DNA of 63,656 nucleotides, filler included, from Octopus bimaculoides (Eukaryota): assembly GCF_001194135.2 (NCBI RefSeq). It is 10 parts of 9 records of this genome, joined end to end, with 100 filler letters (N's around TTAATTAATTAA, not from the genome) between each part and the next. Parts side by side here need not be neighbours in the genome. Positions count along the whole stretch, not along the records: positions 20,622 to 26,928 come from NC_068998.1; 9 more parts are not named here. One strand, 5' to 3'. Shown here one piece after another: positions 23,439 through 23,499 of this stretch. The notes below the pieces were generated by a model. That model searched no databases. It saw only the letters and a list, made by a program, of their open reading frames with translations, and was not told the DNA's origin. Numbering within the stretch: the stretch's first letter is position 1; each line of letters opens with the position of its first letter. The position numbers and the translations under genes are program-made.

Positions 23439-23499
23439 AACAATTATTCTGTGCTGATGAAAGGAAATAACCCAGAAATCGTGATACACAGATATTGTT
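23439..23499 (+). ncRNA. Type I hammerhead ribozyme-like motif
   Basis: AACAAT-TAT-TCTGTG / CTGATGA / AAGG-AAATAA-CCCA / GAAA-TCGTGAT / A / CACAGA-T-ATTGTT. Stem I is 6 bp, an internal loop and 6 bp; helix III is minimal and near-palindromic; the putative cleavage triplet AUA ends at 23486. The base of stem II is non-canonical. Confidence 0.6.

Follow-up and report, generated by a model that had tools for sequence, protein, structure and literature searches.

The window analysed here is a 63,656-nt stretch of DNA from Octopus bimaculoides (NCBI RefSeq assembly GCF_001194135.2), joined from ten parts, and all positions are counted along it. The part from 20622 to 26928, which comes from record NC_068998.1, is AT-rich and heavy in repeats. 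Within this piece lies a repeat cluster, 22707-23607, that is built from a single unit throughout, with direct repeats spaced 278-281 nt apart and seven inverted repeats (I1-I7) of 84-97% complementarity. A hammerhead-like domain with type I topology, in which helix I is open, is carried by the cluster on the plus strand at 23439-23499. This domain is recognised by direct reading, by a descriptor, and by a covariance model.

Other repeats are found elsewhere in the piece. A minisatellite with a 32-bp repeat (TCAAAGACAACAAAAGAAAGACACCACTGAAG; 5.5 copies, 98% identity) occupies 20622-20796 and reaches the edge of the piece. A MITE of ~190-220 bp is present in two copies in opposite orientation, at 25321-25541 and 26310-26496. 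Its ends, CCCTTT...AAAGGG with TTAA flanks, are a piggyBac-type signature, and its arms are ~71% complementary. A SINE-like segment at 25817-25976 shares 73-78% identity with rhodopsin-locus sequences of Octopus vulgaris and O. bimaculoides. ARAGORN detected no tRNA-like gene in the piece.

The hammerhead-like domain begins with the 5' strand of helix I (23439-23453), composed of a distal segment AACAAT (23439-23444), an internal-loop segment TAT (23445-23447), and a proximal segment TCTGTG (23448-23453). The core box CUGAUGA (C3-A9) follows at 23454-23460, and the helix II domain AAGGAAATAACCCA extends from 23461 to 23474. G12-A13-A14, helix III AUCGUGAU, and A17 occupy 23475-23486, where A15.1 is 23478 and U16.1 is 23485. 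The 3' strand of helix I (23487-23499) consists of proximal CACAGA (23487-23492), a bulged T (23493), and distal ATTGTT (23494-23499). Both of the cores reported in the first-pass annotation, CUGAUGA and GAAA, are present, the latter read directly at 23475-23478. This plus copy holds all invariant core positions: C3-A9, G12-A14, A15.1-U16.1, and H17, which is A. Helix I has the form that had been described for it, 6 bp, an internal loop, and another 6 bp; the internal loop is 3/1 (TAT opposite T), and all 12 pairs are Watson-Crick. The cleavage triplet is A-U-A, as had also been described, and the bond predicted to be cut is the one that joins 23486 to 23487.

Helix II is the defective element. 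The first-pass annotation gave it 2-3 bp and a closing A.A mismatch, and the helix proves to be slightly weaker than that. An A.A mismatch at 10.1/11.1 (23461/23474) is followed by an A.C mismatch (23462/23473) and then by only two G-C pairs. The 14-nt domain is capped by the A-rich hexaloop noted earlier, AAATAA at 23465-23470 (AAAUAA in the RNA). The G10.1-C11.1 pair, described as highly conserved in hammerheads, is absent; A.A is found at 23461/23474 and at the homologous positions of the second copy in the cluster. Helix III is minimal. Its eight nucleotides, ATCGTGAT in the DNA at 23478-23485, are nearly palindromic and could form either 2 bp with a tetraloop or, as a dimer, 8 bp.

The cluster can be divided into three modules: A, 72 nt with the hammerhead-like domain; B, 106 nt; and C, ~174 nt. 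One complete, circularly permuted unit of 353 nt lies on the plus strand at 23255-23607, in the order C (23255-23429), A (23430-23501), and B (23502-23607). It has a GC content of 38%, its stop-free stretches reach ~50 codons at most, and no Pfam-recognisable domain was found in it. To the left of this unit, the modules are in minus sense and read A' (23198-23257), B (23092-23197), C (22920-23092), a second B (22814-22919), and a second C that is truncated at its 3' side (from approximately 22707 to 22814). The minus-sense series A'-B-C-B-C(truncated) is therefore opposed head-to-head by a single plus-sense C-A-B unit. The 5' ends of the opposed copies meet at 23255-23257 with an overlap of a few bases (AATT/ATT), the copy on the left being a partial tandem.

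The ~350-bp tandem unit of the first-pass annotation is correct as to the size of the unit but not as to the tandem. TRF detected no ~350-nt tandem array in the piece. The sole direct repeat of the cluster has a period of 278-281 nt, and at its junction, 22919/22920, the second minus-sense B joins the preceding C directly, without the 72-nt module A. The limits of module A are informative in this regard. The module starts with CUC, which precedes distal helix I by nine bases, and ends two bases 3' of distal helix I, and a GAG directly after it is able to pair with the starting CUC in the circular fold. Because of this pairing at the module edges, the 72 nt missing at 22919/22920 match the hammerhead hairpin-like domain almost exactly. 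Loss of the ribozyme by a jump of a polymerase or reverse transcriptase over the base of the extended helix I is plausible but unproven.

Copies of the unit differ by 8-14% (K2P 0.08-0.14), and the value for the first minus-sense module B against the plus copy is 0.08. The two A modules differ by 15% (K2P 0.17), so conservation of the ribozyme module does not exceed that of the other modules, as expected of dead copies. Transcription from 22920 through to 23607 would let the opposed copies pair into a long double-stranded RNA, imperfect at ~90% complementarity, whose arms would measure 166 nt and 98-175 nt. Such an RNA would be of the kind that ADAR editing enzymes use in cephalopods, a property that is generic for inverted repeats.

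The two hammerhead copies announced by the first-pass annotation do exist as modules, but the second is broken and lies head-to-head with the first on the opposite strand. Module A' (minus strand) is degenerate. It reads UUGAUGA in place of the core box, a change of C3 to U, and it has three mismatches in proximal helix I. The 5' strand of its distal helix I is gone at the inversion junction. Its helix II is paired as G.U/G-C/G.U, and its helix III is AUCGCAAU, or ATCGCAAT in DNA, the reverse complement of 23214-23221. The helix III versions of the two copies, ATCGTGAT and ATCGCAAT, differ at a CpG, and the ancestral palindrome AUCGCGAU (ATCGCGAT in DNA), the consensus that had been proposed earlier, is thus a fair inference.

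The remaining differences between the two ribozyme modules point in the same direction. At all nine positions where they differ, the plus copy is the hammerhead-compatible one, an argument that is weakened because the plus copy was ascertained. CpG decay explains the CGTG/CGCA difference, and two C-to-U changes in helix II of the minus copy retain pairing as G.U. The nine-position pattern fits a hammerhead-competent progenitor that would have decayed later. The A.A at 10.1/11.1 is common to both copies, so the mismatch is older than their split. In its present state, the plus copy retains its core and its helix I but has a crippled helix II, and the minus copy is without C3 and helix I. Activity of either copy is unlikely.

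By RNAfold, pair probabilities of the plus copy are 0.84-1.0 for proximal helix I, 0.26 for helix II, and 0 for helix III. The monomeric hammerhead fold lies 4-6 kcal/mol above the MFE structure and is hence not the MFE. A progenitor was reconstructed with helix II GGG/CCC, as inferred from the two copies, and with the CpG-restored AUCGCGAU. In the predicted fold of this progenitor, helix II is stable (probability 0.97). When two progenitor molecules are cofolded, the MFE of the homodimer corresponds exactly to a double hammerhead whose intermolecular helix III has 8 bp, at -36.5 kcal/mol vs 2 x -13.8 kcal/mol. As a circle, the 353-nt unit has a predicted MFE of -85.6 kcal/mol (z = -2.4 vs dinucleotide shuffles), with 61% of the bases paired, and is thus of moderate structure.

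Canonical type I hammerheads, in which helix II has 4 positions and helix I has 6 bp and an internal loop, are associated with retrozymes. The helix sizes and internal loop of the octopus domain match those of validated retrozyme ribozymes, which places it with the canonical rather than the minimal type I. Schistosoma Sm-alpha and newt satellite 2 carry classical type I hammerheads in which an internal loop likewise comes after a helix I of 6 bp. As in the octopus domain, their loop II is A-rich, 6 nt long, and contains AAAUA, and the helix II domain is 14 nt. Both ride on short non-autonomous repeats. Unlike the octopus domain, they keep G10.1-C11.1 and a 4-bp helix II, and their cleavage is proven.

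Experimentally cleaving retrozyme constructs offer a closer comparison. Cervera and De la Pena (2020; PMC7229834) give the sequences of four of these in their supplement, and the architecture of Ax353 and the other printed constructs was parsed by hand. Ax353 reads CACAGC-UUC-ACCUCA CUGAUGA U-GCC-CACUA-GGC-U GAAA CACGUG U A / UGGGGU-U-GCUGUG (PMC7229834). The axolotl element (Rtz_353, with hammerhead HHR_Amex2) and the octopus candidate share a unit of ~350 nt, a helix I of 6 bp, a 3-nt/1-nt loop, and 6 bp, and A17. Both have an 8-nt palindromic helix III, ACACGUGU in the axolotl and AUCG(C/U)GAU in the candidate. Position 10.1/11.1 is mismatched in both, as U.U in the axolotl and A.A in the octopus; the axolotl helix II then has 3 bp, whereas the candidate has the additional A.C mismatch. 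Cleavage by HHR_Amex2 is poor in the monomer, at 22% in one hour, and good in the dimer (PMC7229834). By analogy, function as a dimer would be expected for the octopus candidate as for the axolotl hammerhead. Sequence similarity between the two units is confined to the core. In the axolotl, every unit bears a ribozyme and the units are strung together in large tandem arrays, whereas the octopus cluster has three partial units, one ribozyme-less junction, and one inverted copy.

Retrozymes of the mussel Mytilus galloprovincialis are 350-390 bp repeats with about 5000 type I hammerheads. They resemble the octopus unit in mollusc host, unit size, low GC, and weak or atypical loop-loop contacts, and helix III of mussel Mg353 is palindromic (ACGCGCGU), as in the candidate. 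The mussel ribozyme differs in having a canonical G10.1-C11.1 and a 4-bp helix II. It cleaves as a monomer at ~0.1 per min and gives abundant circular RNA. Published non-LTR retrozymes range from 170 to 400 nt with GC under 45%, and the octopus unit, at 353 nt, 38% GC, and no protein domain, falls inside this range. The assignment to non-LTR retrozymes made in the first-pass annotation is partly supported, by the hammerhead anatomy and by these unit properties; what departs from it is that head-to-tail copies, each with a hammerhead, are not seen in the cluster.

It might be argued that the units belong to an unrelated interspersed or satellite-like repeat, that the likeness of one copy to a hammerhead is accidental, and that a ribozyme was never encoded. 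The nearly absent helix II with A.A at 10.1/11.1, the tandem junction without module A, and the failure of the second copy to fit the motif are all in keeping with this. Chance expectation cuts both ways. Within the piece, CTGATGA-N14-GAAA with at most 1 mismatch was seen 3 times against 0.19 expected, and two of the three are the related copies. The third, an exact match at 26126-26150 (+), has no helix II and a 3-bp helix I and is judged to be a chance occurrence. A relaxed type I descriptor was defined by an exact core, GAAA, U16.1, H17, a helix I of at least 6 bp, and a helix II of at least 2 bp after no more than 2 mismatched pairs. It is expected by chance ~3e-4 to 1e-3 times per 6.3-kb piece, or a few hundred times per 2.7-Gb genome. 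Features outside the descriptor have their own chance probabilities, 0.013-0.08 for a second 6-bp helix past the internal loop and 0.05 for a self-complementary helix III. With these included, chance should produce the complete set of features in a 2.7-Gb genome roughly 0.1-2 times, and all of these chance figures are suggestive rather than conclusive since the site was pre-selected by a reader seeking this motif.

Covariance models, which the first-pass annotation had put forward as a check, gave a divided answer. The Rfam hammerhead families (RF00163 and relatives) had no match at E<=10, either on the 6.3 kb or on a 411-nt sub-window, a result that favours an accidental motif. The only Rfam matches in the piece are miRNA false positives driven by microsatellites. 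A compound microsatellite at 21600-22010, made of (TG)n, (TA)n, (TAGA)n, and related repeats, is the source of spurious mir-297 and mir-3149 matches, both far under their gathering scores. A second model, R1, drew solely on four retrozyme hammerheads whose cleavage has been validated by experiment, one from coral, one from mussel, and two from axolotl (sequences from the PMC7229834 supplement), with the alignment trimmed to proximal helix I, and was searched with filters off. Its top match in the piece is the candidate at 23448-23492, with 16.8 bits and an E-value of ~0.0014 that needs caution, because an unrelated site upstream of rhodopsin scores much the same with R1, at 18.8 bits. The match covers the full model, and only the two basal helix II pairs are non-canonical. 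The next match in the piece, the CTGATGA-N14-GAAA at 26126-26150, has 6.6 bits, and R1 found no match in the minus copy A' at E<=10.

The rhodopsin site is a hammerhead-like core, GCUUCA CUGAUGA GGUCUAAAAAGAAC GAAAC ...GU UGAAAU, located ~4 kb upstream of the rhodopsin gene in O. vulgaris (L001 5944-6003, minus strand) and O. sinensis (L003 5699-5758, minus strand). It receives its score although a clean H17 and helix III are missing. In O. bimaculoides, only CTGACGAGGTCTA is left at this site, followed by a microsatellite, and R1 had no match at E<=1 on the rhodopsin-locus DNA of this species. Hammerhead relics may be common in octopus DNA; otherwise, the tail of the model is optimistic.

Three points oppose an accidental likeness. 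The full feature set is rare by chance, the motif sits in a 353-nt, low-GC, domain-less unit with a Penelope-type arrangement, and all differences between the copies point to a hammerhead-compatible ancestor. On this evidence, we regard a chance resemblance as unlikely, though it deserves to be kept in mind.

The arrangement of the cluster raises the question of Penelope-like elements, which are abundant in octopus genomes (PMC13282606, PMC8967140). Rather than forming a separate ORF-less retrozyme family, the units could derive from an autonomous Penelope-like element as its 3' ends (pseudo-LTR or tail), truncated on the 5' side, and the ribozyme would then be that element's own. Penelope-like insertions are typically partial tandems with an inverted, 5'-truncated copy (PMC8557442), and the layout of 22707-23607, head-to-head with a partial tandem, is this published signature. 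The hammerheads of these elements are mostly solitary motifs from truncated copies, sometimes found as opposite-strand pairs 100-700 bp apart (PMC4209133). The octopus cluster shares with them the opposite-strand pair of motifs and the tandem and inverted insertion, and the candidate shares a palindromic 15.2-16.2 and loop 3 (Cervera and De la Pena 2014, PMC4209133). The extra unpaired nucleotide that they have after A9 has a possible counterpart in the octopus A at 23461, which can be read likewise (PMC4209133).

The ribozyme itself is of another type. In autonomous Penelope-like elements of metazoans, hammerheads are minimal, with a helix II of 6-8 bp, a helix I of 4-5 bp, and a helix III that is absent or tiny (PMC4209133), whereas the candidate is of the canonical retrozyme type. 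Minimal hammerheads keep G10.1-C11.1, are without a defined loop 1, and flank an RT/GIY-YIG ORF, and the candidate differs in all of these. The entire cluster is composed of one 278/353-nt unit, and an RT/GIY-YIG remnant lies beside neither of its ends. Truncated ends of an autonomous element are an improbable source of the cluster.

The search for coding remnants covered the three plus frames from ~23000 and the three minus frames from ~22000 to the end of the piece, and no RT, GIY-YIG, or other Pfam family was found in them. The Penelope-like RT fragments that had been claimed nearby were accordingly not recovered. A frameshifted, stop-ridden coding remnant does begin right past the cluster end at 23607 and covers ~23620-24290 on the plus strand (e.g. 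...RLYDACKRTTMLHGRETWTASVEDM... and ...ERLHWFGQ...). It looks like a LINE tail rather than part of a Penelope-like element, presumably the C-terminal tail of an RTE/CR1-type LINE ORF2. The remnant had no Pfam match, and its composite translation had no homologue in a protein search.

The length of the inverted arms (166 nt and 98 nt, each with 90% complementarity) suggests that they might be terminal inverted repeats, belonging to a DNA transposon or a foldback element, a reading that the first-pass annotation had set against its own. This very improbable reading was rejected because the arms are circularly permuted copies of one unit that abut with no unique segment between them. Moreover, the left arm already contains a tandem, the flanks agree at 9/14 positions at best and so give no convincing target-site duplication, and no transposase remnant was found in the frames scanned with Pfam.

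Relatives of the unit were sought in several collections. The orthologous rhodopsin loci of three Octopus species (O. vulgaris, L001; O. bimaculoides, L002; O. sinensis, L003), ~72 kb of DNA together, contained 0 copies of the unit by BLAST, and the SINE-like segment at 25817-25976 was the only part of the piece to match them. A search of protein space with a 50-codon stop-free stretch spanning the ribozyme returned no candidate. Exact-ORF look-ups of two window ORFs returned no record, and DNA pattern scans for family copies in metagenome contigs, GTDB genomes, and IMG/VR had zero matches. The literature searched yielded no account of hammerheads or of retrozymes from cephalopods in particular. 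Molluscs are already known to have hammerhead retrozymes, and cephalopods to have Penelope-like elements.

Taken on balance, the cluster at 22707-23607 is probably a relic of a non-LTR retrozyme-type insertion, now inactive, that was arranged in tandem and inverted form as by Penelope-like machinery. It is an old and complex insertion of a short element without a recognisable encoded protein. Its match to retrozyme hammerheads in sequence and structure, and the architecture of its repeats, are features of the DNA itself. The canonical-architecture type I hammerhead of this retrozyme-type element probably worked as a dimer.

By analogy with the literature on this family, a cycle of transcription, cleavage, circularisation, and Penelope-like mobilisation may be proposed for the progenitor. 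Transcripts longer than one unit would bring neighbouring ribozymes together, and these would pair through the palindromic helix III (ancestral AUCGCGAU) to form a double hammerhead. Each ribozyme would then cut after A17 (23486) to give 353-nt monomers that carry a 5'-OH at one end and a 2',3'-cyclic phosphate at the other. A host RtcB-type ligase would circularise the monomers. Finally, a Penelope-like reverse transcriptase and GIY-YIG endonuclease would copy and insert the circles, and the products would be partial tandems with an inverted, 5'-truncated copy.

A bolder proposal is that a living octopod retrozyme family exists, in which the hammerhead has its core separated from helix II by a non-canonical A.A (or by two bulged A's), cleaves only as a dimer through a AUCGCGAU helix III, and gives ~350-nt circular RNAs. 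We hold this to be conceivable but doubtful. If true, these would be the first cephalopod retrozymes, with a natural core variant that lies outside present descriptors and Rfam models.

The decayed copies described here bring no gain for mechanism, and the finding is chiefly an annotation point. Should the family be real, hammerhead-bearing retrozymes would be extended to cephalopods, and a natural variant mismatched at 10.1/11.1, missed by Rfam, would become useful for tuning searches for invertebrate ribozymes. Retrozymes can yield very abundant circular RNAs in mollusc tissues, and a live octopus family would therefore be worth knowing.
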